29,952 nucleotides of DNA from Octopus sinensis (taxonomy: Eukaryota): positions 1-29,952 of the forward strand of contig NW_021827578.1 of NCBI RefSeq assembly GCF_006345805.1. The letters run 5' to 3'. Made by a program: the position numbers and the translations under genes. Shown one piece after another: positions 2,067 through 27,370 of the stretch. Positions within the stretch are counted from its first letter, which is position 1; every line of letters starts with the position of its first letter. The notes below the pieces were generated by a model. That model searched no databases and was not told the DNA's origin. It saw only the letters and a list, made by a program, of their open reading frames with translations.

Positions 2067-2262
2067 CATATATATATATAATGTGTGTGTTACCCACCAC
2101 CACCATCGCTTGACAACCGATGCTGGTGTATCTAGGTCCTTGTAATTTAGCAGTCTGTAAAAGAGACCGATAGAATAAGTACTAGGCTTAAATAAGTCCT
2201 GGGTTTGATTTGTTAGACTAAAGGTGGTGCTTCAGCATGGCCGCAGTCAAATGACTGAAACA
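1625..2262 (+). mobile_element. Octopus-type tRNA-derived SINE (GGAGTGGCTGTGTGGTAAG family) with internal (TA)n
   Basis: A/B-box head, CTTGGGCAAGTGTCTT core and tail …CAGCATGGCCGCAGTCAAATGACTGAAAC. Repeated at least five times in the window. Confidence 0.75.
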
Positions 2263-2499
2263 AATTTTTAAAAACTGAATACGAATGCACAAAAGGTTTC
2301 TCCTCCTCCCAATTGTTTTTTTTTTTTTTCGCTAAATTAGAATTCTGACATTAAGCTGAATCTGATGGTAAGGCTCCGGTTTGAGATTTCTGGAATCATG
2401 GGGAGCGTCAAGTCACCCCTTACTTACCATACTCTCAGGTCTATTCTGATCCAGAACGGTTGTACCTGTTAGGGTCCCATTTATGGATCAAATAGATTA

Positions 2500-2900
2500 T
2501 TCTTTTCTATTCTAGGTACAAGGGCCAAAAATTTGGGGAAGGGTGCCAGTCGATTAGGTCGACCTCAGTACGCAACTGGTACTTAAGTTATTGACCCCGA
2601 GAGGATGAAAGGCAAAGTCGACCTCGGCGGAATTTGAACTCAGAACGTAAAAACCGACGAAATACCTATTTTTTTACTACCCACAAGGGGCTACACACAG
2701 AGGGGACAAACAAGGACAGGCAAACGGATTAAGTCTATTATATCGACCCCAGTGCGTAATTGGTACTTATTCAATCGACCCCGAAAGGATGAACGGCAAA
2801 GTTGACCTCGGCGGAATTTGAACTCAGAACGTAACGGCAGACGAAATACGGCTACGCATTTCGCCCGGCGTGCAAACGTTTCTGCCAGCTCGCCGCCTTA
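2500..2900 (-). mobile_element. Second SINE family (GGCGGCGAGCTGGCAG head) with tandemly repeated ~190-bp body
   Basis: TCGACCCCGAAAGGATGAAAGGCAAAGTCGACCTCGGCGGAATTTGAACTCAGAAC occurs twice. Confidence 0.72.
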
Positions 2901-2974
2901 CGCCTACAGTATATTGTAAAATATAGAAACGATCATATGGAACTGTAATAATTATTATTTATATGAACCTCTAG

Positions 2975-3570
<596 letters not shown>

Positions 3571-3855
3571 TATTTAATTGTGTCTGGGGAGAGTCATTCT
3601 CTTTTAGTGCCTTATTGAACTCACTCACCGATGCGATTTCCTATCATTTACTTATCTATTTTTTCTAAAATTTTCATTGCGTCTTGCAAACCTTTTCAAT
3701 AGTCATTAACTCTGTCCGTTTTCAGAGCTGCGTTTTTCTTTGTTTGTGCGCATGTGTGCGCATCAGTATGCATATGCATATACATATGTATGCATGTGTG
3801 TGTGTGTGTACGTTTGTATGCATGTATTCTGCATATTCATGTTTGTATTTGTTTG

Positions 3856-3897
<42 letters not shown>

Positions 3898-3902
3898 TAC
3901 AT

Positions 3903-4200
3903 AGGCGTAGGAGTGGTTGTGTGGTAAGTAGCTTGCTTACAAGCCACACGGTTCCGGGTTCAGTCCCACTGTGTCTTCTACTATAGCCTCGTGTCGACCA
4001 AAGCATTGTGAGTGGATTTGGTAGACGGAAACTGAAAGAAGCCCGTCGTATACGTTTGAGTGTCTGTGCATACGTTTGTGTGTCTGTGTTTGTCCTCCCA
4101 ACATTGCTTGACAACCGATGCTGGTGTGTTTACATCCTCGTAATTTAGTGGTTCGGCAAAATTGACCGATAGAATAAGTACTAGGCTTACAAGAATAAGT
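3903..4200 (+). mobile_element. Same SINE family
   Basis: Head and tail match 1625-2262. Confidence 0.75.
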
Positions 4201-5185: not shown

Positions 5186-6019
5186 CTAAATACCTGCTCT
5201 TAGCACTCAATATACGAAAGCTTCGGTATAAAGAGTTAACTGAGTACAGATCATAATATGAATTAATTAAACGACAACGATCAGATGTTACGTTATCAAC
5301 TTCATCGACTTTAAAAGCTCCGAGGAAGTAATGAGATGATGCACTACCACTCATCTCAGAGCGTACCAATTTTTGTGGCAGTATTAGCTGTAAGCTAATG
5401 AAGTCGATTGCGTAACTTCTGTTCCCTGGTTACTCAACTGATAAATATCATATCATACATTATATCATATCAAAAGTTATATCATATCGAAACCTCTTCT
5501 CGAGGTTTTGTGAGCGGAATTCAGTTTACTGTAAGATTCACTCTTGTCTCATCACCAGAGTTGTGAACAACCAGGATATCTTGGCACTGGACAGCCAAGG
5601 TACCTTGGCCATGTGTCTTCTAGTATAACTTTGACTTCGCCAATATCTTACGAGTGGAATTTGGTTGACTGAAACCGCTGTGTGAAAGTACGTATATCTG
5701 TGTGAATGTGTGTTTGTGTGCGTTTGTGTGTGTGTGCTTGTATTGCAACTGTGTTATGCCAGAGGACCGAACTCAAGTTCCTTTAATATTTGAAAAGGAT
5801 AGTCAACAAGCTATACATTCCAGCTACAATTTTAGCGAGACTCTATACAGGATTTTTTTTTAATTGAACAAATTCAAAAAGATTCTGGAATTCTAGTTTG
5901 CAACTTAAACGTAAACCAACTTTCTTACCTCTCTCAGAGACACAAATTTTCATTTCCTACATGTTAGCCAAGATGCACTCTACTCAAATTTCATCCCGCA
6001 AAAATTAATGTCTTCACAT

Positions 6020-6420
6020 AGGCACAGGTGTGGCTGTGTGGTAAGAAGCTTACTTCCCAACCGCATGGTTCCAGTTTCAGTCCCCCTGCGAGACACCTTG
6101 CGCAAGTATCTGGTACTAAATCCGCTTCGGGCCGACCAAGGCCTTTTGTGAATGGAATTGGTAGACGGAAACTGAAAGAAGCCCGTCGTATATATAAATA
6201 TGTCTGTGTATCTTAGTGTCTCTGTTTGTCTCCTATCGCTTAGCAACCGGTGCAAGTGTGTTTACGTACTCGTAAATTAGCGGTTCGACAAAAGATACCG
6301 ATACAATAAGAACCACGCTTAAAAAGCAAGTACTAGGGTTGATTCATTCGACTAAAAGAAAATCTCCAAGGTGGTGATCCAGTATGGCCGCAATCTAATG
6401 ACTGAAACACGTAAAAGATA
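6020..6420 (+). mobile_element. Same SINE family, diverged
   Basis: Head and tail match. Confidence 0.72.
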
Positions 6421-6979
6421 TAAAAGTTACATAGACTCCATTCTCCGTCTCTTATCTCTATAACCTGGATTTCAGCAATATCAACTTCAACAAATATTGT
6501 ATATTCTATCTCAAAACCTTCTTTCCTTTTTCACCTTAGTATAACTGATCCTTCTATCGCCCTCCGAAACCCTCGAACCAACAGCAAATTTTTGGCCATT
6601 GAGAACATATATTTCACGTCTCTCTCCTCTGCGAAATCAACTCTTTGCAACGTCTTGTTTCGTCCCTATATATGTATATATTTTCATATTATATTTTGAG
6701 GTAAAAGTTATTCAGTAAATTGAACCAACGAGAACATATAGACTGAGACAGACAGACAGAATCCCTAGATTTCATGGTAACATATTTAGAAGAACATGGT
6801 TATGTCATGTTGACTTCACTGCTTTAGTAATTGCATAAGTATATGTGTGTGTGTGTGTGTGTGCGTGCGTGCGTGTGTATGTATGTATGTGTGTAAGCGT
6901 ATATATGTGTGTGTGTGTGTATGCATGTGTATGTATATATATATATATGTGTGTGTGTGTGGTGTGTGTGTGTGTGTGT

Positions 6980-8391: not shown

Positions 8392-9780
8392 GAACTTTGC
8401 GGCTATTGCCGGCGTCAACAGGGAAGACATGAAACTTGAAAACGAAGAAGTGAGCAAGTTTAAAGGAATGCTTCAGCGAGAGGGGTATGAGATCAAACTT
8501 ACCCTTCCCAACGAAGCGAGCATTATACCGCTCGGAAGACCATTATTTTTAAGGTAATATCAATTAAGGGGGAAAAGCTGGAAATGCCGGCGGGAAATAA
8601 CATCATTAGGTGAGACAAGTTGACACTGAATCAGCTTCGCTGACTGACAGGTGACGGTCGTTTAGAAAATGCGCGGGCTAAAACTACGCGCCTTCACTAG
8701 TCAATTAAGGTGAGACAGTGTCACTTGACAACTTGCTGGGGCTGCCTGCTGGAGCCTAGAGGCAGGTATTTAAAGGGAAAATTTTGACAAGTCAGTCAGT
8801 CACCGGCTGACACTCGCTGACGATACATCGAAGAGGCCAGGGAACAGAAGAAAGCAGAAAGAAGACATGCACCCAACACCAGAGCTGAAGACACCGCCGA
8901 AAGGCGGGGCCGCGCCACGTCAAAACGGTAGAGGAGTAGGGGCCGAAACCGGACGTGGTTCCTCCTGATGATGTCTTGAGCTAACTGGATCCTATAAAGG
9001 AGCTGTTGTGGTAGCAGACCACGAAACACAGTTGTAATTCTAACGTACAGGTGGGAAAATACCTACAATCAGCTTGGCAAAATGTTGTATATCTTGCCAG
9101 AGGGAATCGATTCACAACAATAAAGGTGTAGTTCGCAAATGAAGATAAGCCCAGGCAACACTCTGAGTGTTGCCTGGGCTTATCTTCACTTGCGCTATTG
9201 TGCAGTGCCCGAGGATATCGGAGATGTGGGTTTATGCTGAACACCTGCTGTCATGTTTAGGGAGGGCACAGCTGTCTTCCGGGTCTATAATAAAGATTGT
9301 TCCACCTCCCTCCCTCTCAAGGGAAAGGCAAGTTTATTTCATTGCGGTAGTAGCAACTGCGAACGAGGTGGTATGGAAATCGCGTTTGAGAGGAGCAGGG
9401 ACAGGCGACCCCATCTTCAGCCGCGGCTTGGTAAACTACTTCGTTTGCCAACTCAGAAGGAAAATAAGGATGGAGAGGAGCTGCCTACCTCTGAGTGTGT
9501 TCAAGAAAAGATGGAAAAAATGTAACGTACATGTTGTGAGTAAATGTGACCCCTTAAGGGAAGTCAAAAGGTCGAGAAAAGGTTCAATGGTGGTACGCGG
9601 TTTGTGGGGTCGCACCCCGTCCCCCATTTCATTTTTCATAATCAATTTTCATTCGTTTATATATTTATTTATTATTAAATTTTTGATCAAATGTTATCAT
9701 TCGGAATAAATCACCCCCTCATCCCTTGTCTGTCCCCTCTTTGTATATTCCCCTGTAGATTATTAAAGAATAAATCATCT
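8392..9780. other. Unclassified GC-richer insert within the mariner, possibly LTR-like
   Basis: Composition shift; TATTTAAAGGG followed by CAGTCAGTCAGTC; AATAAA near the end; internal 61-bp palindrome. No recognisable coding domain. Confidence 0.3.
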
Positions 9781-11225: not shown

Positions 11226-11627
11226 TAGGTGCATGCACACAAGTGCAATGCAGAAAAAGCGTGATCTCCAGTTCCGATGTAGATTTTTTTTTAAGTTCAT
11301 TCATTTTCTCACACAGTAACCTTGTTTCAAACGTAACACATTACTGCAAAATAATCTCACTTGTTTCTTATCAAATATTTATGAAATGATTATGTTTTAA
11401 AAAGAAGCAATAATGCAACCGCTAAACATTAAAATAATGCTATAAGAAGATTTGTTTTTAAAAGAATAATTTAATAAAATAAGCATCGAGGCATATGGAA
11501 AAATGCGTTATATGATGGAACTCGAAGTAGCAAAAGCTATAATAAAATTCATACAGAACATTAAATTCATACAGAACATTGAACAGAGAAGAGCCGGAAG
11601 CTTCTTTAGGATTCTAAGATGTTTAGG

Positions 11628-12030
11628 TGGGCGAGCAGGCAGAATTGCGTAACACCAGGCGAAATACTTAGCGGTATTTCGTCTGCCGTTACATTCTGAG
11701 TTCAAATTCCGCCGAGGTCGAAATTGCCTTTCATCCTTTCGAGGTCGATAAATTAAGTACCAGTTACGCACTGGGGTCGATGTAATCGACTTAATCCGTT
11801 TGTCTGTCCTTGTTTGCCCCCTCTGTGTTTAGCCCCTTGTGGGTAGTAAAGAAATAGGTATTTCGTCTGCCGATACGTTCTGAGTTCAAATTCCACCAAG
11901 GTCGACTTTGCCTTTCATCCTTTCGGGGTCGATAAATTAAGTACCAGTTATGTACTGCTGTCGATATAATCGACTTAATCCGCTTGTCTGTCCTTGTTTG
12001 TCCCTTCTATGTTTAGCCCCTTGTGGGCAA
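11628..12030 (+). mobile_element. Second SINE family, tandem body
   Basis: Reverse complement of the 2500-2900 type. Confidence 0.72.
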
Positions 12031-12194
12031 TAAAGAAACAAGTTGTTTAGGTGTGAGTTAAGCCGTAGTATTAATATGCGCAAAAAACATATGTTCTTTG
12101 TTTCACATTTGATACAAATGACAGGCAAAAATTTAAATAAAGCTGAACAAGTTAACAATTCAACCAACAGTTTGCACCACATAGTTATCAAATA

Positions 12195-12405
12195 TTGCTT
12201 TCAAATTTTGGCACAAGGACAACAATTTTTAGCGTGGGGCAAGTCGATTACATCGACCCCAGTATGCAACTGATACTTATTCTATCGACCTCGAAAGAAT
12301 GAAAGGCAAAGTCGACCTCGGCGAAATTTGAACTCGGAACGTAAAGACGGACGAAATGCCGCTAAACACTTTGCCCGGCGTGCTAACGATTCTGCCAGCT
12401 CGCCG
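12195..12405 (-). mobile_element. Second SINE family, monomer
   Basis: Same body and head in the opposite orientation to 11628-12030. Confidence 0.72.
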
Positions 12406-12692
12406 ATTAAAGTTATATTCTCTTGCACAAACAATAACGATAACGAACAGAAAGTAGTACTGTTCACATCTGAACTGCATCTAGGTCTTACATGGCGAGA
12501 GAGTTACAAAAATCATTTGAAAACTTGATCATTATCGAAACCAGGAAAAGATTAATAGACGTTATATGTTATTCACTATATTGTATGGGGCTGAAATACG
12601 GAGAAGGTTAACAAAAGAACATTGTCAAATAAGCTAAGGTCTTTCGAAATCTGGGCTTACAGAAGATATTTGAAAACATCAATGATAGAAGG

Positions 12693-12850
12693 CGCAGATA
12701 TGACTGTGTGGTAAGAAGTTTGTTTTCCATCCATATAGTTTCGGGTTCAGTCCCACTGCATGGCACCTTGAGAAAGTGTCTTCTTCTATAACCTCAGACC
12801 GACCAAAGCCTTGTGAGCAGACTTGGTTGACTGAAACTTAAAGCAGCCCT
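12693..12850 (+). mobile_element. Same SINE family, head only
   Basis: TGTGTGGTAAGAAG…GGGTTCAGTCCCACTGC…GACCAAAGCCTTGTGAG. Confidence 0.65.
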
Positions 12851-13917
12851 GCATAGGGGCTATCCAGCCTCCCGCCTTCGCCGTGAACAATAATTAATCT
12901 TCTCTCTTAGTTCTTTTGCGCTACATGGGCTCAACTCACCTCCTCTCTTCATCTGACACCAACCTCGCCTCCTCTCTTCATTTGACACCAACCCCATACC
13001 ACTCCACGCACACTAGCACTGACCACTTCTCAGACCCCCACACACAATCTTCAATAGCGTCACTACATATACTACTATATGAACATCTACACATACACAC
13101 ACAGTTTAACTCAGTACACACACCACACACCATCATGCACACTCGCACACCCACACAAGCACATAATACCTGTACACAGACAATATATATACACACATGC
13201 AACACGCATTAACACACGCAACACGCATAGACAAAGATAAATTTCACCCACGTACATACACCATACACATGCACATGGTTCTGGGCTCAGTCCCACTGCA
13301 TGGCAACTTGGGCAAGTGTCTTCTGCTGTAACCGCGAGCCAACCACACACGCACACACGCACACACGCACACGTCAGTCATTCGCCCCCATTCACACATA
13401 CACCCTTACACACTTACACACACCATTCTCGCATACACCCACGCACGCGCACTTTCTCTTGTTGGGATCACCGCCACTATTATTATCTTTCTTTCATTCA
13501 ACCCCTTTTCTCCAATCATTCGCCATGCTGTATCGCTGAACTCTACACGTTTTTCATTCTCTCTCTATTTATTTCTTCTTATGCCTTTCTGTCGAAGAGC
13601 ATAGGCTCAAAATGTAAAATATTTTTCCATTTTTCTCGAGCGTCAAACTAATGCACTCGCTTGATGTTTCTAGTCGTGTCTTCGTCTTCTTTTTTCTATA
13701 AATTTCAACTATATATACATATATATATATTCAATATGTGACCGCGTGCGTATCGTTGGCGATTTTCTTTCTCCGTGTTCCCTTCCTTGGACCTTTCCTT
13801 TTTCTATGTTTGTAACGAAGAGCTCCGCTCGAAACGTTAAATCCTCCTTCTTTCTTCCACGTCCTTCTTGTTCCACGTCCTCGTGTTGTTGTGTTTTCTC
13901 TTCGCTCATGTCTGGAT

Positions 13918-16075: not shown

Positions 16076-16193
16076 GTGTGCATACACGTGTGTACCTGCG
16101 CATAACAAGCACTGGGGTTTGGTAAACGTTGGGTGTCGGCAATTGGCAGTCCTGTTGGTTGCTGACGGTGACCTTGGTGCAGACGGTGTAAGG

Positions 16194-17221
16194 CAGGGGT
16201 GGGCGAACTTTTTTGATCGCGGGCCGCACAGTGCGTCTTTGGAACCTTGGCGGGCCTCATTTATAAAAATCAAGTGAAAATATTTTTAAAGGCGGTTATA
16301 GACCTATAAACACACAATTGATTGAAAGGAAATTTTGTGAAATATTCCTGGTTTAAGTGATTTTATTTATTTTTAGAGTATCGGGTTCATGTTTTTCGGT
16401 TATTTGCTCCTATAGTTGAAATTATTACAGGAACCTCGGTTATTTTGGACAGCCTGTTATTGCTTACAAATTGCCAGGAACGGAATTTTCCTAGTAAAAT
16501 CTGCACTAATTGTGGACAACCACCTCTTAATATTATGGACAACCATGATGAATATTATACTTAAATTCTAGGATACCCAAAATAAAAGATTTTAAAGAGA
16601 AATTACAGTTTATTAATATGAATTGATATCTGAAATTAGAAACGTCACCTGAAACATTTATTTGAAAAACAAAGCGGCTCTGTAAATAACAATGTCAATG
16701 AGAATAATGCAGCTGTCTACTGTCATTACCAGTTTGTCAAAATTAGGTGTCAAGTTGCTTGTGCTGATTCTTAACACTGACTGAAGATTTGAGTCTGTGA
16801 GAAGTGATCGATTCTTCCCCTTGTTAATTTTCATGATGGAGAAAGTCTGCTCACATATGTGGAAGCACTCCGTCGGTTACGACGACGAGGGTTCTTGTTG
16901 ATCCGATCAACGGAACAGCCTGCTTGTGAAAACGTGTAAGTGGCTGAGCACTCACAGACACGTGGTATCCTTAACGTAGTTCTCGGGGATATTCAGCATG
17001 ACACAGAGAGTGACAAGGCCGCGGCCTTTTGAAATACAGGTACAATAGAAACAGGAAAAGGAAGTAAGAGTGAGAGAAAGTTGTGGTGAAAGTGTACAGC
17101 AGGGATCACCACCATCCTTGCAGGAGCCTCGTGGAGCTTTAGGTGTTTCGCTCAATAAACACTCACAACGCCCGGTCTGGGAATCGAAACCGCGATCCTA
17201 CTACCGCAAGTCCGCTGCCCT
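16194..17221 (-). mobile_element. Duplicated one-ended copy of the same hAT element
   Basis: GTGTAAGG (16186-16193) followed by TIR CAGGGGTGGGCGAAC. Cut off by the viral insert at 17221. Confidence 0.9.
16861..17221 (-). mobile_element. Duplicated copy of the same SINE, with its 5' A-box end removed by the viral junction
   Basis: Matches 25965-26322; lacks AACCACTGGGCCATT. Confidence 0.85.
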
Positions 17222-17651
17222 CCCGGTCAGGTCTCCTATCCAAAAAGTTCAGTGCACAGCACGCTTTAGGAGAGGGGACAGGCAAAGATATCAAATTACA
17301 AAGCAAGATTTGACAGTTAGAAATGACGCAATACCGGGAGGGAGGGAGGTGGAGGAATCTAAAGAATTTAGCGGATAGGTATTCTTTAGATTCCTCCACC
17401 TCCTCCCCCTCCCGGTATTGCGTCATTTCCTAACTGTCAAATCTTGCTTTGTAATTTGATATCTTTGCCTGTCCCCTCTCCTAAAGCGTGCTGTGCACTG
17501 AACTTTTGGATAGGAGACCTGACCGGGAGGGAGGGAGGTGGAGGAATCTAAAGAATTTAGCGGATAGGTATTCTTTAGATTCCTCCACCTCCCTCCCTCC
17601 CGGTCAGGTCTCCTATCTCCACCTCCCTCCCTCCCGGTCAGGTCTCCTATC
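17218..17651. repeat. Type-B hairpin module: spacer-hairpin-inverted spacer-hairpin-34-bp tandem duplication
   Basis: 107-bp spacer 17227-17333 and its reverse complement 17416-17522. Hairpins 17334-17415 and 17523-17603 with loop TTAGCGGATAGGT. Tandem 34-mer at 17583-17616 / 17617-17650. Confidence 0.92.
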
Positions 17652-17782
17652 GTCTGCTAAGTTTTTATCTTGGTAATATTCTTTATCGTGTTCTTTAAAC
17701 AAGCTTCGTCTAATTCGTCGATAGGTTCACCAAGATTTAATTTATTAAATGGTCCGCAATATTTGTAAACTCCGGGTAACAT
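17648..17782 (-). pseudogene. Truncated VP1 copy encoding only about the first 45 codons (PLA2 part)
   Basis: Nearly identical to the 5' end of the other copies. Joined to hairpin module B through a TATC microhomology at 17648-17651. Confidence 0.85.
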
Positions 17783-17951
17783 AACAGTTGCGCCTAAATA
17801 TCAATGGCGCCTAAATGAATGTACTATCACGTGATCTTATAGCGCACTGATTGGCTATTTAGCGATATCCGGTTATTGCATCACTTTTTTTAAAAAGGGA
17901 GATAATAACAATAAAGAATATTACAAAAAATTCCCCTCTTGGGGCCAAATT

Positions 17952-18010
17952 AAAAAAAAAAAACAGTGCACAAAAAACCTTCCTACCGACGAAGTCGGTA
18001 GGGAGGGAGG

Positions 18011-18050
<40 letters not shown>

Positions 18051-18302
18051 TTTAGTAATCCTTGCAAATGCACTGCTCAAAGACGGCAACCGGGAGGGAG
18101 GGAGGTTAGTAGAATATGACTTATCGGCTTAGTCATATTCTACTAACCTCCCTCCCTCCCGGTTGCCGTCTTTGAGCAGTGCATTTGCAAGGATTACTAA
18201 AAAAAAAATAAAAAAAAAAATAAAAAAAAAAATAAAAATTTTTCCTCCCTCCCTACCGACTTCGTCGGTAGGAAGGTTTTTTGTGCACTGTTTTTTTTTT
18301 TT
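17952..18302. repeat. Type-A junction palindrome (fused inverted terminal repeats), junction 1
   Basis: ~170-bp arms around the 9-nt loop TATCGGCTT (18122-18130). Core stem CCGGGAGGGAGGGAGGTTAGTAGAATATGACT. Each arm has a sub-hairpin CCTACCGAC-GAA-GTCGGTAGG and poly-A/T tracts. Confidence 0.95.
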
Positions 18303-18505
18303 TGGGGTTTTTTTTATTTTGATTTTACAAAACATAAATATTTTATCTCGAGGATATTACTAATTATATAATAATGATATTGAAAATGATATAAAATATA
18401 TAAAATATAAAGAAGTTATCTCGAAGATATTACTAGTTATATAATCAATAAACGACTAGTTGCTGCTAGAACTTTTTTTGAAGAAGAAACGATCTCCGGA
18501 CTATG

Positions 18506-20100
18506 TCACCTCATTGCTGGGAAAGCTGATTCATAACCTGTTCCTGTATATGTACGTAGGCTTTGTGGCCATTGATTCAAATTCATTTTGTGTTCAGGAT
18601 TTAATGGACAACGACTAGTTGCTGCTGGAACTCTAGGTAAGTAACCTACAAATTGTGGTGAACCTGATGGTTTTTCGAATTCGATCTCGCTGAAATAATC
18701 TATCGTAATCAAAAAAGTAATTTTCGCTGCTTGAGAATTGCTATCCAAATTGGTATAGGATCTAAAACTGCAACTGGTGGTGGATCAGATGGATTTATTG
18801 GCATTTGAGTCAAACAACTTCTGCTGGGTACTTTTTCATCTGTCAGCATATCGTTCCATGTTGTTTTACCATTTGTTTTCGGGAACCCAATTATCTGTAG
18901 CATTTTGGAATGCGTTAATTTCAACAGGCATTCCGAATCATTACCGATTTCACCGTAAGTTATATGTCCCGCAAGAGCATCAAAATCCGATGCATTAAAC
19001 CAACCTGGAGTATTATTAGTCCATGTATATTGCCAGGTTTGATCTGCTCTCAATACGTTCCATCTACCAGTATTGTAAAGGCTCATTAATTCTCTCCATT
19101 CATCTCTTTTATATTCTCTGTTATTTTGTTTGGTTGAAATTGAAAAGTTTCAGTTGGTACTTTTCTATTGGACGGGATGTTTTAACTTCCCTTCATCTCT
19201 ATTTTCTGGTATATTGTGTCGTAATCGTTATTGACTTGTTCAACAGCCCTTGTCATATTCGAAAGAAAGCTGCATTTGTATCGACATATGTCATAATCCA
19301 AGGTCTCGTATTGAATGTAGTATTAGTAGTAGTAGTACCTTGAAGTGAACTTAGATCGTCTGTTATAGGAACAACGTTTGATACACGAAAACCACACTTC
19401 CTGACTCTCCATTTAGTACATGTATATAAAGATGCTTGTAACTCAGCTTTCGTTGCCGAAGCTCTTAGATCTGCATATGGTATTTCAACGCATCTATGTT
19501 CGAATTTCATATCTGTCCATTTGTGTGAGTTCTTGTTGAATTGAAATTACATTTATCAAGAGGTTGGTCGAAAGCATCCAAGTAATGAAATAGAGTTCTT
19601 GAGAATGTTTTTCTTTCGATTGGATTTTTGTCTCCTATTCTCGGAGGTCGATCGCTCGCAATAGTTGTTCCCTGTCCACTGGAAGTGTAACCGACATCAT
19701 CTGGTGATGGTCCTATGGTATCATCCGCTACAATTCCCGTATCTCATAAAAGATGGTTGCCCACATCGAATAGGTGAAGACATATCGCAATATTCCTGCT
19801 GTTCGTTTCTGTATCTTCTATTTCTTTTCTTTTGATCGTTTACAGGAGGCATCAAGAATTTATCTGAAATATCGTTCGTATATTTAATCTAAAATCTTTT
19901 AGTGTTGATAGCAGTTTTTGCAATAGCAGAGTTTATACCCGGTATTTTATCTAATTCTTTAAAAAAATATCGTCTGCTAAGTTTTTATCTTGGTAATATT
20001 CTTTATCGTGTTCTAAACAAGCTTCGTCTAATTCGTCGATAGGTTCACCAAGATTTAATTTATTAAATGGTCCGCAATATTTGTAAACTCCGGGTAACAT
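18506..20100 (-). CDS. VP1: Densovirus-like capsid protein VP1, copy 1 (more apparent indels)
   Basis: Colinear, near-identical to copies 2 and 3. ORF pieces 18506-18748, 18709-19086 and 19253-19510 match the consensus peptide. ATG at 20100. Confidence 0.85.
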
Positions 20101-20268
20101 AACAGTTGCGCCTAAATATCAATGGCGCCTAAATGAATGTACTATCACGTGATCATTTATAGCGCACTGATTGGCTATTAGCGATATCGGTTATTGCATC
20201 ACTTTTTTTAAAAAGGGAGATAATAACAATAAAGAATATTACAAAAAATTCCCCTCTTGGGGCAAATT

Positions 20269-20598
20269 AAAAAAAAAAAACAGTGCACAAAAAACCTTCC
20301 TACCGACGAAGTCGGTAGGGAGGGAGGAAAATTTTTTTTTTTTTTTTTTTTTTTAGTAATCCTTGCAAATGCACTGCTCAAAGACGGAACCGGGAGGGAG
20401 GGAGGTTAGTAGAATATGACTTATCGGCTTAGTCATATCTACTAACCTCCCTCCCTCCCGGTTGCCGTCTTTGAGCAGTGCATTTGCAAGGATTACTAAA
20501 AAAAAAATAAAAAAAAAAATAAAAAAAAAAATAAAAATTTTTCCTCCCTCCCTACCGACTTGTCGGTAGGAAGGTTTTTTGTGCATGTTTTTTTTTTT
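20269..20598. repeat. Type-A junction palindrome, junction 2
   Basis: Same arms and loop (20422-20430) as junction 1. Confidence 0.95.
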
Positions 20599-20800
20599 GG
20601 GGGTTTTTTTTATTTTGATTTTACAAAACATAAATATTTTATCTCGAGGATATTACTAATTAATAATTATTAATATATGAAAATGATATAAAATATATAA
20701 AATATAAAGAAGTTATCTCGAAGATATTACTAGTTATATAATCAATAAACGACTAGTTGCTGCTAGAACTTTTTTTTGAAGAAACGATCTCCGGACTATG

Positions 20801-22413
20801 TCACCTCATTGCTGGGAAAGCTGATTCATAACCTGTTCCTGTATATGTACGTAGGCTTTGTGGCCATTGATTCAAATTCATTTTGTGTTCAGGATTTAAT
20901 GGACAACGACTAGTTGCTGCTGGAACTCTAGGTAAGTAACCTACAAATTGTGGTGAACCTGATGGTTTTTCGAATTCGATCTCGCTGAAATAATCTATCG
21001 TAATCAAAAAAGTAATTTTCGCTGCTTGAGAATTGCTATCCAATATTGGTATAGGATCTAAAACTGCAACTGGTGGTGGATCAGATGGATTTATTGGCAT
21101 TTGAGTCAAACAACTTCTGCTGGGTACTTTTTCATCTGTCAGCATATCGTTCCATGTTGTTTTACCATTTGTTTTTTCGGGAACCCAATTATCTGTAGCA
21201 TTTTGGAATGCGTTAATTTCAACAGGCATTTCCGAATCATTACCGATTTCACCGTAAGTTATATGTCCCGCAAGAGCATCAAAATCCGATGCATTAAACC
21301 AACCTGGAGTATTATTAGTCCATGTATATTGCCAGGTTTGATCTGCTCTCAATACGTTCCATCTACCAGTATTGTAAAGGCTCATTAATTCTTCTCCATT
21401 CATCTCTTTTATATTCTCTGTTACTTTTTGTTTTGTTTGAAATTGAAAAGTTTCAGTTGGTACTTTTCTATATTGGACGGGATGTTTTAACTTCCCTTCA
21501 TCTCTATTTTCTGGTATATTGTGTTCGTAATCGTTATTGACTTGTTCAACAGCCCTTGTCATATTTCGAAAGAAAGCTGCATTTGTATCGACATATGTCA
21601 TAATCCAAGGTCTCGTATTGAATGTAGTATTAGTAGTAGTAGTACCTTGAAGTGAACTTAGATCGTCTGTTATAGGAACAACGTTTGATACACGAAAACC
21701 ACACTTCCTGACTCTCCATTTAGTACATGTATATAAAGATGCTTGTAACTCAGCTTTCGTTGCCGAAGCTCTTAGATCTGCATATGGTATTTCAACGCAT
21801 CTATGTTCGAATTTCATATCTGTCCATTTGTGTGAGTTCTTGTTGAATTGAAATTTACATTTATCAAGAGGTTGGTCGAAAGCATCCAAGTAATGAAATA
21901 GAGTTCTTGAGAATGTTTTCTTTCGATTGGATTTTTGTCTCCTATTCTCGGAGGTCGATCGCTCGCAATAGTTGTTCCCTGTCCACTGGAAGTGTAACCG
22001 ACATCATCTGGTGATGGTCCTATGGTATCATCCGCTACAATTCCCGTATCTATAAAAGATGGTTGCCCACATCGAATAGGTGAAGACATATCGCAATATT
22101 CCTGCTGTTCGTTTTCTGTATCTTCTATTTTTCTTTTCTTTTGATCGTTTACAGGAGGCATCAAGAATTTATCTGAAATATCGTTCGTATATTTATCTAT
22201 AAATCTTTTAGTGTTGATAGCAGTTTTTGCAATAGCAGAGTTTATACCCGTATTTATTATTATCTAATTCTTTAAAAAAATATCGTCTGCTAAGTTTTTA
22301 TCTTGGTAATATTCTTTATCGTGTTCTAAACAAGCTTCGTCTAATTCGTCGATAGGTTCACCAAGATTTAATTTATTAAATGGTCCGCAATATTTGTAAA
22401 CTCCGGGTAACAT
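20801..22413 (-). CDS. VP1: Densovirus-like capsid protein VP1, copy 2 (C-terminal 362 codons open)
   Basis: ORF 20801-21889 overlaps copy 3's N-terminal ORF (…LFHYLDAFDQPLDK…). Together they give a continuous ~536-aa protein. EIPYADL…RVRKCGFRVSNVVP resembles densovirus jelly-roll strands. ATG at 22413 by alignment. Confidence 0.88.
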
Positions 22414-22584
22414 AACAGTTGCGCCTAAATATCAATGGCGCCTAAATGAATGTACTATCACGTGATCATTTATAGCGCACTGATTGGCTATTTAGCGATA
22501 TCCGGTTATTGCATCACTTTTTTTAAAAAGGGAGATAATAACAATAAAGAATATTACAAAAAATTCCCCTCTTGGGGCCAAATT

Positions 22585-22919
22585 AAAAAAAAAAAACAGT
22601 GCACAAAAAACCTTCCTACCGACGAAGTCGGTAGGGAGGGAGGAAAATTTTTTTTTTTTTTTTTTTTTTTTTTAGTAATCCTTGCAAATGCACTGCTCAA
22701 AGACGGCAACGGGAGGGAGGGAGGTTAGTAGAATATGACTTATCGGCTTAGTCATATTCTACTACCTCCCTCCCTCCCGGTTGCCGTCTTTGAGCAGTGC
22801 ATTTGCAAGATTACTAAAAAAAAAATAAAAAAAAAAATAAAAAAAAAAATAAAAATTTTTCCTCCCTCCCTACCGACTTCGTCGGTAGGAAGGTTTTTTG
22901 TGCACTGTTTTTTTTTTTT
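22585..22919. repeat. Type-A junction palindrome, junction 3
   Basis: Same arms and loop (22741-22749). Confidence 0.95.
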
Positions 22920-23121
22920 GGGGGTTTTTTTTATTTTGATTTTACAAAACATAAATATTTTATCTCGAGGATATTACTAATTATATAATTAATGATATTG
23001 AAAATGATATAAAATATATAAAATATAAAGAAGTTATCTCGAAGATATTACTAGTTATATAATCAATAAACGACTAGTTGCTGCTAGAACTTTTTTTTGA
23101 AGAAACGATCTCCGGACTATG

Positions 23122-24722
23122 TCACCTCATTGCTGGGAAAGCTGATTCATACCTGTTCCTGTATATGTACGTAGGCTTTGTGGCCATTGATTCAAATTCT
23201 TTTGTGTTCAGGATTTATGGACAACGACTAGTTGCTGCTGGAACTCTAGGTAAGTAACCTACAAATTGTGGTGAACCTGATGGTTTTTCGAATTCGATCT
23301 CGCTGAAATAATCTATCGTAATCAAAAAAGTAATTTTCGCTGCTTGAGAATTGCTATCCAATATTGGTATAGGATCTAAAACTGCAACTGGTGGTGGATC
23401 AGATGGATTATTGGCATTTGAGTCAAACAACTTCTGCTGGGTACTTTTTCATCTGTCAGCATATCGTTCCATGTTGTTTTACCATTTGTTTTTTCGGGAA
23501 CCCAATTATCTGTAGCATTTTGGAATGCGTTAATTTCAACAGGCATTTCCGAATCATTACCGATTTCACCGTAAGTTATATCCCGCAAGAGCATCAAAAT
23601 CCGATGCATTAAACCAACCTGGAGTATTATTAGTCCATGTATATTGCCAGGTTTGATCTGCTCTCAATACGTTCCATCTACCAGTATTGTAAAGGCTCAT
23701 TAATTCTTCTCCATTCATCTCTTTTATATTCTCTGTTACTTTTGTTTTGTGTTGAAATTGAAAAGTTTCAGTTGGTACTTTTCTATATTGGACGGGATGT
23801 TTTAACTTCCCTTCATCTCTATTTTCTGGTATATTGTGTTCGTAATCGTTATTGACTTGTTCAACAGCCCTTGTCATATTCGAAAGAAAGCTGCATTTGT
23901 ATCGACATATGTCATAATCCAAGGTCTCGTATTGAATGTAGTATTAGTAGTAGTAGTACCTTGAAGTGAACTTAGATCGTCTGTTATAGGAACAACGTTT
24001 GATCACGAAACCACACTTCCTGACTCTCCATTTAGTACATGTATATAAGATGCTTGTAACTCAGCTTTCGTTGCCGAAGCTCTTAGATCTGCATATGGTA
24101 TTTCAACGCATCTATGTTCGAATTTCATATCTGTCCATTTGTGTGAGTTCTTGTTGAATTGAAATTTACATTTATCAAGAGGTTGGTCGAAAGCATCCAA
24201 GTAATGAAATAGAGTTCTTGAGAATGTTTTTCTTTCGATTGGATTTTTGTCTCCTATTCTCGGAGGTCGATCGCTCGCAATAGTTGTTCCCTGTCCACTG
24301 GAAGTGTAACCGACATCATCTGGTGATGGTCCTATGGTATCATCCGCTACAATTCCCGTATCTATAAAAGATGGTTGCCCACATCGAATAGGTGAAGACA
24401 TATCGCAATATTCCTGCTGTTCGTTTTCTGTATCTTCTATTTTTCTTTTCTTTTGATCGTTTACAGGAGGCATCAAGAATTTATCTGAAATATCGTTCGT
24501 ATATTTATCTATAAATCTTTTAGTGTTGATAGCAGTTTTTGCAATAGCAGAGTTTATACCCGGTATTTTATCTAATTTCTTTAAAAAAATATCGTCTGCT
24601 AAGTTTTTATCTTGGTAATATTCTTTATCGTGTTCTAAACAAGCTTCGTCTAATTCGTCGATAGGTTCACCAAGATTTAATTTATTAAATGGTCCGCAAT
24701 ATTTGTAAACTCCGGGTAACAT
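23122..24722 (-). CDS. VP1: Densovirus-like capsid protein VP1 with N-terminal PLA2, copy 3 (5' half open; apparent frameshifts downstream)
   Basis: ORF 24003-24722 begins MLPGVYKYCGPFNKLNLGEPIDELDEACLEHDKEYY...ADDIF: Ca-binding loop YxGPxN, catalytic HDxxY and the downstream Asp of parvoviral PLA2. A basic KKRK follows. Stop TGA at 23122-23124 by alignment to copy 2. Confidence 0.88.
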
Positions 24723-24800
24723 AACAGTTGCGCCTAAATATCAATGGCGCCTAAATGAATGTACTATCACGTGATCATTTATAGCGCACTGATTGGCTAT
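24723..24800 (-). promoter_or_regulatory. Putative VP promoter (also upstream of the ATGs at 17782, 20100 and 22413)
   Basis: Minus strand reads AGCCAATCAG (CCAAT, 24792-24796), TATAAA (24778-24783), palindromic E-box ATCACGTGAT (24766-24775), then two ATTTAGGCGC repeats before the ATG. Confidence 0.65.
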
Positions 24801-24894
24801 TTAGCGATATCCGGTTATTGCATCACTTTTTTTAAAAAAGGGAGATAATAACAATAAAGAATATTACAAAAAATTCCCCTCTTGGGGCCAAATT

Positions 24895-25115
24895 AAAAAA
24901 AAAAAACAGTGCACAAAAAACCTTCCTACCGACGAAGTCGGTAGGGAGGGAGGAAAATTTTTTTTTTTTTTTTTTTTTTTTATTTTTTTTTAGTAATCCT
25001 TGCAAATGCACTGCTCAAAGACGGCAACCGGGAGGGAGGGAGGTTAGTAGAATATGACTTATCGGCTTAGTCATATTCTACTAACCTCCTCCCTCCCGGT
25101 TGCCGTCTTTGAGCA
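24895..25115. repeat. Type-A palindrome, junction 4, right arm truncated
   Basis: Full left arm and loop (25060-25068). Right arm stops after TTGCCGTCTTTGAGCA at 25115. Confidence 0.92.
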
Positions 25116-25181
25116 ATACGGGAATTGTAGCGGATGATACCATAGGACCATCACCAGATGATGTCGGTTACACTTCCAGTG
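25116..25181 (+). other. Inverted 66-bp VP fragment at the right virus-host junction
   Basis: ATACGGGAATTGTAGCGG…CACTTCCAGTG is the reverse complement of VP sequence at about 24297-24362. The last GTG is shared with host DNA. Confidence 0.9.
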
Positions 25182-26322
25182 TGCATACACGTGTGTACCT
25201 GCGCATAACAAGCACTGGGGTTTGGTAAACGTTGGGTGTCGGCAATTGGCAGTCCTGTTGGTTGCTGACGGTGACCTTGGTGCAGACGGTGTAAGGCAGG
25301 GGTGGGCGAACTTTTTTGATCGCGGGCCGCACAGTGCGTCTTTGGAACCTTGGCGGGCCTCATTTATAAAAATCAAGTGAAAATATTTTTAAAGGCGGTT
25401 ATAGACCTATAAACACACAATTGATTGAAAGGAAATTTTGTGAAATATTCCTGGTTTAAGTGATTTTATTTATTTTTTAGAGTATCGGGTTCATGTTTTT
25501 CGGTTATTTGCTCCTATAGTTGAAATTATTACAGGAACCTCGGTTATTTTGGACAGCCTGTTATGCTTACAAATTGCCAGGAACGGAATTTTCCTAGTAA
25601 AATCTGCACTAATTGTGGACAACCACCTCTTAATATTATGGACAACCATGATGAATATTATACTTAAATTCTAGGATACCCAAAATAAAAGATTTTAAAG
25701 AGAAATTACAGTTTATTAATATGAATTGATATCTGAAATTAGAAACGTCACCTGAAACATTTATTTGAAAAACAAAGCGGCTCTGTAAATAACAATGTCA
25801 ATGAGAATAATGCAGCTGTCTACTGTCATTTACCAGTTTGTCAAAATTAGGTGTCAAGTTGCTTGTGCTGATTCTTAACACTGACTGAAGATTTGAGTCT
25901 GTGAGAAGTGATCGATTCTTCCCCTTGTTAATTTTCATGATGGAGAAAGTCTGCTCACATATGTGGAAGCACTCCGTCGGTTACGACGACGAGGGTTCTT
26001 GTTGATCCGATCAACGGAACAGCCTGCTTGTGAAATTAACGTGTAAGTGGCTGAGCACTCCACAGACACGTGTATCCTTAACGTAGTTCTCGGGGATATT
26101 CAGCATGACACAGAGAGTGACAAGGCCGGCCCTTTTGAAATACAGGTACAATAGAAACAGGAAGTAAGAGTGAGAGAAAGTTGTGGTGAAAGTGTACAGC
26201 AGGGATCACCACCATCCTTGCAGGAGCCTCGTGGAGCTTTAGGTGTTTTCGCTCAATAAACACTCACAACGCCCGGTCTGGGAATCGAAACCGCGATCCT
26301 ACTACCGCAAGTCCGCTGCCCT
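25179..26322 (+). repeat. Right copy of ~1.15 kb host direct duplication
   Basis: Starts GTGTGCATACACG and ends GTCCGCTGCCCT, like the left copy. The host SINE continues intact past 26322. Confidence 0.95.
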
Positions 26323-26950: not shown

Positions 26951-27005
<55 letters not shown>

Positions 27006-27027
27006 GTGTGTGTGTGTGGTGTGTGTG

Positions 27028-27370
27028 TAGGAGTGGCTGTGTGATAAGTAGCTTGCTTACCAACCACATTGTTCCGGGTTCAGTGCCACTGCGTGGCACC
27101 TTGGACAAGTGTCTTCTACTATAGCCTTGTGAGTGGATTTGGTAGGCGGAAACTGAAAGAAGCCAGTCTTATATATGTGTGTGTATGTTTGTCTCCTCAA
27201 CTTCGCTTGACAACCGATGCTGATATGTTTACGTCCCCGTAACATTGCGGTTCGGCGAAAGAGAGCGATAGAATAGGTACTAGGCTAACAAAGAATAAGT
27301 CCTGGGGTCGATTTGTTCGACTAAAGGCGGTGCTCTAGCATGGCCACAGTCAAATAACTGAAACAAGTAA
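27028..27370 (+). mobile_element. Same SINE family; a further tail fragment at about 27440-27640
   Basis: Head and tail match. Confidence 0.75.

Follow-up and report, generated by a model that had tools for sequence, protein, structure and literature searches.

The one known bipartite parvovirus is Acheta domesticus segmented densovirus (AdSDV), which was demonstrated from virion DNA (PMC10267136). Head-to-tail concatemers of adeno-associated virus (AAV) arising from rolling-circle replication and from circularisation mediated by inverted terminal repeats (ITRs) are documented (PMC8195378, PMC11575299, PMC2765622), and truncated and snap-back species occur in preparations of recombinant AAV (PMC10556190). 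Parvovirus-related sequences are known in general from molluscs (PMC5013282), and the insertions of infectious hypodermal and haematopoietic necrosis virus (IHHNV) in shrimp are described as devoid of hairpins (PMC11357303). No paper on cephalopod or octopus parvoviruses, or on their endogenous elements, was found in the searchable literature; Octopus vulgaris proteins annotated "capsid" and "nonstructural" are already public. Here we describe a tandem array of parvoviral units coding for the capsid protein VP1 and devoid of the nonstructural gene NS1, found in a stretch of 29,952 nucleotides of Octopus sinensis DNA (the window: assembly GCF_006345805.1, contig NW_021827578.1, positions 1 to 29,952 of the forward strand). 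What is new about this endogenous parvoviral element is that it combines a capsid-only gene content with complete telomeres and a concatemeric structure, that more than one locus carries it, and that it is extremely young.

The array occupies positions 17648-25115 and comprises 3.2 head-to-tail copies with a period of about 2315 bp, as defined by self-BLAST of the window (19968-25115 matches 17648-22796 with 97.8% identity across 5.2 kb, the start-to-start distance being 2309-2320 bp). Read along the minus strand, each unit is made of a near-perfect palindrome of ~350 bp, a promoter of ~170 bp, a VP1 gene of 1611 nt (536 codons, on the minus strand in every unit) and an AT-rich spacer of ~200 bp (Table 1). 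CCAAT, TATAAAT and initiator-like TCATTT motifs were read directly in copy 2 upstream of the ATG at 22413, in a promoter that is 98-99% identical to the three promoters of a sister array found in O. vulgaris (locus L001, see below). An AATAAA signal closes the spacer at the border of the next palindrome. The unit is a complete Pol II-type cassette enclosed between ~350-bp palindromes, and, since the intact sister copy in L001 has a single open reading frame (ORF) longer than 100 codons per unit, there is no room for NS1. A direct repeat of 10-11 nt (ATTTAGGCGC, twice) is present between the predicted transcription start and the VP ATG, at 22440-22414 of the minus strand and in every promoter. 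An Rfam search gave no matches.

The initial annotation, made from the sequence of the window, had given the array these same limits. Its tandem description stands but overlooked a 5' stub of a further copy (copy 0, 17648-17782), a 66-nt inverted cap (25116-25181) and a 1.15-kb duplication of host DNA. The layout that it proposed for the unit, with an ITR arm, a promoter, a VP1 with a phospholipase A2 (PLA2) domain and a ~200-bp spacer, agrees with our reading except for the open VP1 ORF, which is open as assembled in 0 of the 3 full window copies. Likewise, the hairpin-bounded, capsid-only unit is confirmed but not as a free genome: the window holds an integrated concatemer within host DNA.

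Domain, profile and fold searches identify the product of the array gene as a parvovirus VP1 composed of a PLA2 domain and a predicted parvoviral jelly roll. The N-terminal ORF piece matches the parvoviral PLA2 family PF08398 of Pfam (E 3e-13, 50.3 bits for a cutoff of 23.9) and aligns with the VP1 unique region of AAV, including the catalytic HD..Y motif; the intact natural octopus VP (P0001) gives the same PLA2 result. Searched as a single sequence, the non-PLA2 part has weak matches to the capsids of Penaeus monodon metallodensovirus (PmMDV) and Penaeus stylirostris densovirus (PstDV). The profile of the 49-member family extends this homology among PDB sequences to AAV VP1 (1e-23) and chapparvovirus 9nek (2e-20), with PstDV at 1.5e-10 and PmMDV at 1.9e-10. 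The PLA2 domain sits at the N-terminus, as in VP1 of Parvoviridae, and an eight-stranded jelly roll of the parvoviral type is present in the AlphaFold2 model of P0001 (pLDDT 70.9, pTM 0.60, the jelly-roll core being mostly >85). Foldseek comparison of this model to the PDB returns Parvoviridae capsids as all of its top 50 matches, the best being PstDV (E 1.6e-10), with further matches to PmMDV, chapparvovirus (TM 0.53 to target), Bombyx mori densovirus (BmDV), AAV, bocavirus and B19. The best structural and profile matches of the jelly-roll part are the capsids of PstDV/IHHNV (3n7x), PmMDV (6wh3/6wh7) and Syngnathus scovelli chapparvovirus (9nek), to which identity is only 14-15%, with TM-scores of 0.48-0.53 normalised to the target. 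These proteins are short, with 329-369 residues in their PDB chains, and, unlike octopus VP1, lack an N-terminal PLA2. A PLA2 protein of the Polinton/adintovirus type is ruled out by profile and fold, the significant structural matches being all single jelly-roll parvovirus capsids. A 362-aa piece from the window has 99% identity with the 536-aa protein CAI9722213.1, recorded as "capsid [Octopus vulgaris]". The parvoviral capsid that the initial annotation had recognised is thus borne out by the Pfam match, the profile search and the predicted fold, the profile and structure checks being those that it had named, and the octopus host that it had supposed by the identity to the O. vulgaris protein.

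The inter-unit regions have the character of parvoviral telomeres, that is, of the terminal hairpins or palindromes that bound Parvoviridae genomes. The first junction palindrome (J1, 17952-18302) folds far more stably than its shuffled versions (Table 1). Along each arm there are a hairpin core of 149 nt, a pair of GGGA-repeat blocks, runs of A/T and, at 17982-18002, a small side hairpin; the core is a perfect palindrome except for an asymmetric 9-nt loop. J1 is a telomere-derived structure resembling a single ITR common to two units. The 14-nt stem motif of GGGA repeats occurs 19 times (<=1 mismatch) for 0 expected, and all occurrences but one fall within 17336-25043. The Rep-binding element of AAV is a tetranucleotide repeat and, by analogy, the paired GGGA tetranucleotide-repeat blocks of each telomere arm are likely candidates for NS1-binding sites.

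A second hairpin type (H2) forms a cluster at 17222-17647, on the left of the array. Its 16-nt CCGGGAGGGAGGGAGG stem is the same as in the array hairpin, and its tip and flanks differ. H2 brackets a sequence of ~110 nt in inverted duplication, and a direct repeat of 34 nt x 2 is detected by TRF at 17583-17651; the cluster folds with -221.5 kcal/mol (z = -38). It has no counterpart in L001 or in the NS1 locus L003 of O. vulgaris (see below). H2 may represent a mini-genome reduced to hairpins, or else a terminus that belongs to another molecule, helper or partner. The co-integration of this almost hairpin-only mini-unit shows that heavily deleted replicative by-products were present.

The array is integrated, endogenous DNA. 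Viral DNA is contiguous with host chromosomal DNA on both sides, in a window of eukaryotic DNA rich in microsatellites and copies of a tRNA-derived short interspersed element (SINE); octopus SINEs and microsatellites flank the array left and right. The adjoining host segment is found twice, at 16076-17221 and 25179-26322, with 1 substitution in 1137 bp and 9 small indels between the copies. A SINE is interrupted at the end of the left copy, and its uninterrupted continuation is found only beyond the right copy; the target was therefore duplicated at insertion. A target duplication of 1.15 kb is very long and suggests a replicative or staggered-break mechanism of integration. At the left junction host DNA and hairpin stem overlap by 4 nt, and at the right junction host DNA overlaps by 3 nt with the 66-nt inverted VP fragment. 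The left end of the array stops ~133 nt into the fourth VP copy, which abuts the H2 cluster. The locus of the window was not recovered from the O. vulgaris assembly.

The VP1 copies of the window were compared as they stand with the intact natural ORF of L001. Frameshifting indels number 16 in copy 1, 4 in copy 2 and 11 in copy 3, accompanied by 4, 3 and 3 substitutions, respectively, and in-frame indels and stops due to substitution are absent from all window copies. Between whole units there are 3-5 substitutions versus 27-33 indel events, and the duplicated host flank displays the same indel-heavy ratio, with 1 substitution to 9 indels. About 1/3 to 1/2 of the indels fall in homopolymer runs. 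Differences between repeat copies are mostly 1-nt indels, with indel events outnumbering substitutions about 7-9 to 1, host DNA included. This spectrum looks like the noise of an unpolished long-read assembly and not like mutation, so that the ORF breaks of the window are unreliable and are not to be read as decay, an explanation that we dropped because the same excess of indels is found even in the duplicated host flank. An indel-rich long-read assembly, in which palindromes and tandem repeats are difficult to assemble, also raises the question of whether episomal viral concatemers from an infected animal were misjoined to host sequence. We consider such an artefact very improbable: at either end the array is joined to one and the same host segment, the junctions show microhomology, the 1.15-kb target is duplicated, and a comparable array is found inside an independent chromosome-scale assembly (L001).

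L001 is a VP-only array located at 168.36 Mb on O. vulgaris chromosome OX597817.1 (176.7 Mb), where it encodes CAI9722213.1. Its units are three VP-only ones arranged head-to-tail and two partial ones in inverted orientation. Two of its ORFs are intact (536 aa, annotated "capsid"), differ by one substitution and keep an intact promoter and poly(A) signal, the third copy having four 1-nt indels. Its flanks share only SINEs with those of the window, and therefore L001 is a different locus. Its inter-unit regions are hairpin multimers of 0.8-1.8 kb (830-1800 bp), whereas each junction of the window has a single palindrome. Tandem arrays with a period of about 125 bp and up to ~12 copies are found in L001 at 2315-3536, 5843-6659, 8821-9652 and 11816-13614; their repeat unit, formed by a half-hairpin, a GGGA-stem and a poly(A) run, resembles a telomere-derived mini-satellite and is absent from the window.

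The two arrays are separated by 2 fixed substitutions per 1.6 kb of VP, with copies 0-3 differences apart; the insertions are very recent, as judged from these substitutions and from the intact ORFs of L001. Intact 536-aa ORFs with intact promoter and poly(A) signal would also be expected if the host kept the capsid array for a function of its own, for example interference with a related virus. Such domestication, which is compatible with the other explanations considered here, has in our opinion very little probability, since the copies are too young for their intact ORFs to be a sign of selection.

The hairpins tell more about the relationship between the two loci. Within one locus the 149-nt cores have 0 substitutions and the asymmetric 9-nt loops are uniform in direction (4/4 in the window and 3/3 in L001), and therefore each array grew from one template. 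Between loci, loop orientation relative to VP is opposite (flip/flop) and the cores (window 18053-18201 versus L001 ~12037-12186) differ by ~16 substitutions in 149 nt (~11%), which are symmetric and keep the palindrome, whereas the adjacent VP sequences differ by ~0.1%. Symmetric core differences are the product of hairpin-templated viral replication, not of chromosomal mutation. Together with the opposite orientation, they imply that the two arrays are independent insertions of replicated VP-only DNA and not a segmental copy of one another. The core divergence points to an exchange of telomeres, to a molecule whose two ends are unlike, or to telomeres that evolve very fast.

This comparison bears on the scenario of a single VP-plus-telomere insertion whose 2.3-kb unit was multiplied by unequal crossing-over, the resulting array being then copied to a second locus by segmental duplication. 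Tandem duplication in the chromosome would give the same pattern of near-identical copies and uniform hairpin orientation within each locus. However, the loci share no flanks except SINEs, the regions between units differ in construction (one palindrome in the window versus multimers of 830-1800 bp in L001), and neither opposite hairpin orientation nor symmetric core changes that keep the palindromes are expected of chromosomal mutation. In addition, the edges of the arrays have partial copies and small pieces of the gene in inverted orientation, which is typical of recombination between the ends of free viral DNA. An origin of the arrays after integration thus appears quite unlikely.

An exhaustive search with P0001 uncovered 83 relatives. 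The closest, P0038, shares 44% identity over its full length and is encoded by a metagenome scaffold of 4017 nt (L004), which begins with a Y-shaped hairpin of 87 nt (z = -5.2) and carries VP (464-2041), a gap of 131 nt and NS1 (2172-3953) on the same strand. P0040 (34%) is encoded in a eukaryotic contig of 1.1 Mb (L005) where NS1+VP units of 3.6-4.0 kb are integrated head-to-tail, with palindromes confined to the gap from NS1 stop to VP start. VP precedes NS1 also in L002 (VP 30%), and in the Logan contig L007 it is followed by a weak match to the NS1 N-terminus; the Logan contigs L006 and L040 are too short to show gene linkage. VP and NS1 are thus linked on one molecule in 4/4 relatives with usable context (L004, L005, L002, L007), among which segmentation was not found. 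As read from these sequences, the standard genome of the lineage is monopartite, about 4 kb long, with the order telomere-VP-NS1-telomere, VP and its promoter adjoining the left telomere. The arrangement with VP upstream of NS1 on the same strand and telomeres in the NS1-to-VP gap is found in L004 (1-4017), L005 (364-13734) and L002 (10001-13445). The usual gene order in monosense Parvoviridae is NS then VP, and the order of this lineage, which is the reverse, appears to be undescribed. In L002, the last bases of VP and ~117 nt downstream (11458-11584) recur 2.9 kb upstream (8559-8685) with 98% identity, the interval being devoid of NS1; the host genome of this distant relative may contain a partial repeat of the VP-only kind.

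NS1, with its HUH nuclease and SF3 helicase, accompanies VP in Parvoviridae genomes and is present in L004, L005 and L002. It is absent from the octopus unit, from the window and from L001: Pfam gives no NS1 match, and 33 NS1 sequences used as tblastn queries have no match with E under 0.1 in either the window or L001. A protein search with the NS1 of L004 returned only itself and one Logan fragment, with no octopus NS1. Scans of viral contigs with VP and with the hairpin gave no matches, and a metagenome scan with a four-sequence VP alignment gave distant matches at the PLA2 level only. An NS1 with matching termini was found neither in protein collections nor near L003, the octopus genomes and reads themselves not having been scanned.

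L003 is the locus of the one annotated O. vulgaris NS1 element (P0031, L003 8533-10864, at about 9.51 Mb of OX597822.1). Two ORFs in different frames encode its HUH-type N-terminal domain and its SF3 helicase, and a long interspersed element (LINE) with endonuclease-reverse transcriptase is inserted directly downstream. Its first ORF has ~275 N-terminal residues of unrecognised origin. Within 10 kb of L003 there is no VP, and the element itself lacks both palindromes and the GGGA motif and does not resemble the unit in nucleotide sequence. Its NS1 is 45% identical to that of L004 in the helicase domain and 27% in the N-terminal domain, for 44% between the octopus and L004 VPs. L003 is an older, separate insertion that is not tied to the array. 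A role as the cognate NS1 partner is not supported, given the lack of shared nucleotides, GGGA motif, palindromes and nearby VP and the LINE inserted afterwards.

We lean towards the view that the array of the window is a head-to-tail concatemer (three full copies and one truncated) of a very young, NS1-less deletion derivative, integrated in a chromosome of the O. vulgaris complex. It is seen as an NS1-less derivative because the nearest relatives carry VP and NS1 on one ~4-kb molecule. Two traits of a defective genome are there: symmetric telomere palindromes flank every unit, and NS1 is missing from the position that it occupies in the relatives, between VP and the right telomere. Defective parvoviral genomes that retain both ends are classical, and the hairpin-only by-products integrated beside the array also speak for a defective genome. 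An internal deletion of NS1 from a telomere-VP-NS1-telomere genome would generate a defective VP-only unit, whose copying would depend on NS1 supplied in trans. The VP-only monomer could circularise so that one telomere is shared, rolling-circle copying of this circle would yield a uniform head-to-tail multimer, and the multimer would then join the chromosome by microhomology-mediated or replicative end joining, giving rise to the target duplication. In its integrated form the unit would be unable to replicate alone, and it may still be transcribed.

Several observations weigh against this view. The parent NS1+VP genome with the VP and telomeres of the array was not found in the searches described above, the closest NS1+VP genome being 44% identical in VP, and the term deletion derivative leans on relatives that are only 30-44% identical in sequence. 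An O. vulgaris element with NS1 and no VP exists (L003). Known defective parvovirus genomes are usually heterogeneous and seldom retain a neat capsid cassette. The same unit and 3' spacer are found at two loci with diverged telomeres and opposite orientation, which fits a persisting VP-only replicon at least as well as a one-off deletion. Finally, the assembly of the window is noisy, and we infer rolling-circle amplification and replicative integration from anatomy alone.

These points bring forward another explanation, in which the octopus unit represents either the capsid segment of a bipartite parvovirus or a capsid satellite that is stable; it would descend from a monopartite ancestor, have its NS1 on another molecule and have been endogenised more than once. 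The same tidy VP-only unit is indeed found at two unrelated loci, and the ~16 symmetric substitutions in 149 nt of the cores, for 2 in 1.6 kb of VP, combined with the opposite flip/flop states, point to a VP-only lineage that replicated for some time as a virus; yet, more simply, these telomere variants could come from a linear molecule with two slightly unlike ends, of which each array or circle kept one. H2, which lies beside the array and shares only the 16-nt GGGA-repeat stem, is a candidate for the terminus of a partner or helper, but the segments of AdSDV, the precedent for a bipartite parvovirus (PMC10267136), are 3.3 kb long with identical termini, while the octopus monomer would have ~2.5 kb and H1, the hairpin of the array, differs from H2 outside the stem. 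An NS1-only element does exist elsewhere in O. vulgaris (L003), but it is broken, LINE-interrupted, without palindromes or shared nucleotides, and no closer to L004 than VP is. The relatives with usable context (4/4) link VP and NS1, and the search for an NS1 with matching termini was negative within the bounds given above. We therefore regard a segment or satellite as unlikely, if somewhat more probable than an origin after integration.

The initial annotation had preferred a real segment over a deletion because of the tidy gene-plus-promoter layout without NS scar. That the unit holds neither NS1 nor a remnant of it is in full agreement with the Pfam and tblastn negatives. The preference does not follow: VP adjoins the left telomere with its own promoter in L004, L005, L002 and L007, so that removal of NS1 from the gene order of the relatives leaves exactly the octopus layout. 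A tidy, scar-free unit is therefore not in itself evidence for a segment.

Table 1. Features of the VP-only array and of its host flanks in the window.
Feature	Position	Strand	Basis and remarks
Host segment A, left copy of the 1.15-kb duplicated target	16076-17221	.	98.5% over 1153 bp versus 25179-26322; ends within dispersed SINE-like repeat
Second hairpin type (H2) cluster, 426 bp	17222-17647	.	Palindrome 17232-17509; 108-nt hairpin 17510-17617; 34-nt direct repeat
VP copy 0, truncated (first ~133 nt of gene)	17648-17782	-	BLASTN, intact O. vulgaris ORF nt 1-133 at 98.5%
Promoter region, copy 0 (CCAAT, TATA, initiator-like)	17783-17951	-	Homology to 22414-22584
Junction palindrome J1	17952-18302	.	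Self-comparison; fold -198.3 kcal/mol, z = -37
3' AT-rich spacer with poly(A) signal, copy 1	18303-18505	-	Homology to 20599-20800
VP1 gene copy 1, broken as assembled	18506-20100	-	Comparison with intact O. vulgaris ORF
Promoter region, copy 1	20101-20268	-	Homology and reading of elements
Junction palindrome J2	20269-20598	.	Self-comparison
3' spacer, copy 2 (AATAAA 20614-20609)	20599-20800	-	Read directly
VP1 gene copy 2, broken as assembled; holds 362-aa ORF 20801-21889	20801-22413	-	Comparison with intact ORF
Promoter, copy 2 (CCAAT 22487-22483, TATAAAT 22474-22468, CACGTG 22464-22459, TCATTT 22449-22444)	22414-22584	-	Read directly
Junction palindrome J3	22585-22919	.	Self-comparison
3' spacer, copy 3	22920-23121	-	Self-comparison
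VP1 gene copy 3, broken as assembled; holds 239-aa PLA2-bearing ORF 24003-24722	23122-24722	-	Comparison with intact ORF, Pfam
Promoter, copy 3	24723-24894	-	Homology
Junction palindrome J4, partial, cut about 60 nt beyond centre	24895-25115	.	Self-comparison
66-nt inverted VP fragment at right virus-host junction	25116-25181	+	BLASTN, ORF nt 362-427 at 98.5%; inverted repeats
Host segment A', right copy of duplicated target, continuing into undisturbed host DNA	25179-26322	.	Self-comparison, junction reading

The remainder of the window has ordinary octopus repeat content. Five copies of a tRNA-derived SINE are found at 1601-1696, 3879-3974, 5996-6091, 12666-12761 and 26999-27094, 69-84% identical to the first, and another dispersed repeat has a 184-bp tandem duplication at 11673-12038.

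Endogenous parvoviral elements are common and are usually decayed fragments without hairpins, whereas the octopus arrays keep near-identical, complete units at two or more loci. They record parvoviral concatemerisation and a probable entry into the germ line, with flip/flop states, hairpin-only by-products and a target duplication of 1.15 kb. They also point to an undescribed parvovirus lineage of marine invertebrates with VP upstream of NS1, and to a capsid-only, NS1-dependent replicon that existed in octopuses very recently, so that sequence surveys alone could test how segmentation or satellite status originated among animal single-stranded DNA viruses. If the less probable segment or satellite explanation were true, this would be the second segmented parvovirus and the first outside insects, caught through its genomic footprints and endogenised at least twice with different telomere variants. 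On the practical side, the octopus "capsid" annotations correspond to viral insertions and could cause false positives in cephalopod virus screening.

The octopus unit has in common with AdSDV a capsid cassette on its own hairpin-bounded molecule without NS1, the presence of the PLA2-bearing gene there, and a monopartite ancestry. The AdSDV segments have 3316 and 3332 nt, and their left and right T-shaped hairpins are non-identical to each other and the same on both segments. The octopus element, in contrast, is found as integrated DNA only, with a 2.3-kb unit, symmetric ITR-like junction palindromes and a second hairpin type sharing only the 16-nt stem. With AAV concatemers, integrated or episomal (PMC8195378, PMC11575299, PMC2765622) it shares the head-to-tail arrangement, one ITR-derived palindrome per junction and rearranged end fragments and, by analogy, a putative dependence on Rep/NS1 recognising a tetranucleotide-repeat element in the hairpin stem. 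Wild-type AAV proviruses, however, carry rep and cap while the octopus unit has cap only, and AAV concatemers are those of cultured vertebrate cells while the octopus array would lie in the germ line of a cephalopod.

The clusters derived from IHHNV in Penaeus monodon (PMC9357335, PMC11357303) are, like the arrays described here, clustered parvovirus DNA, fixed or segregating, in the chromosomes of a marine invertebrate, some of it recent. The IHHNV elements are scattered fragments, whereas the octopus element, which is capsid-only, retains its telomere palindromes whole, along with the promoter and the poly(A) signal, and has intact ORFs in L001. Defective genomes with internal deletions, of autonomous parvoviruses as well as AAV, are similar to the octopus unit in that they keep both termini, have lost the replication gene and need a helper, and the hairpin cluster at 17222-17647 resembles their extreme forms. 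Defective genomes of the classical type are heterogeneous, and their capsid gene is usually lost too; the octopus has one precise capsid cassette at two loci.

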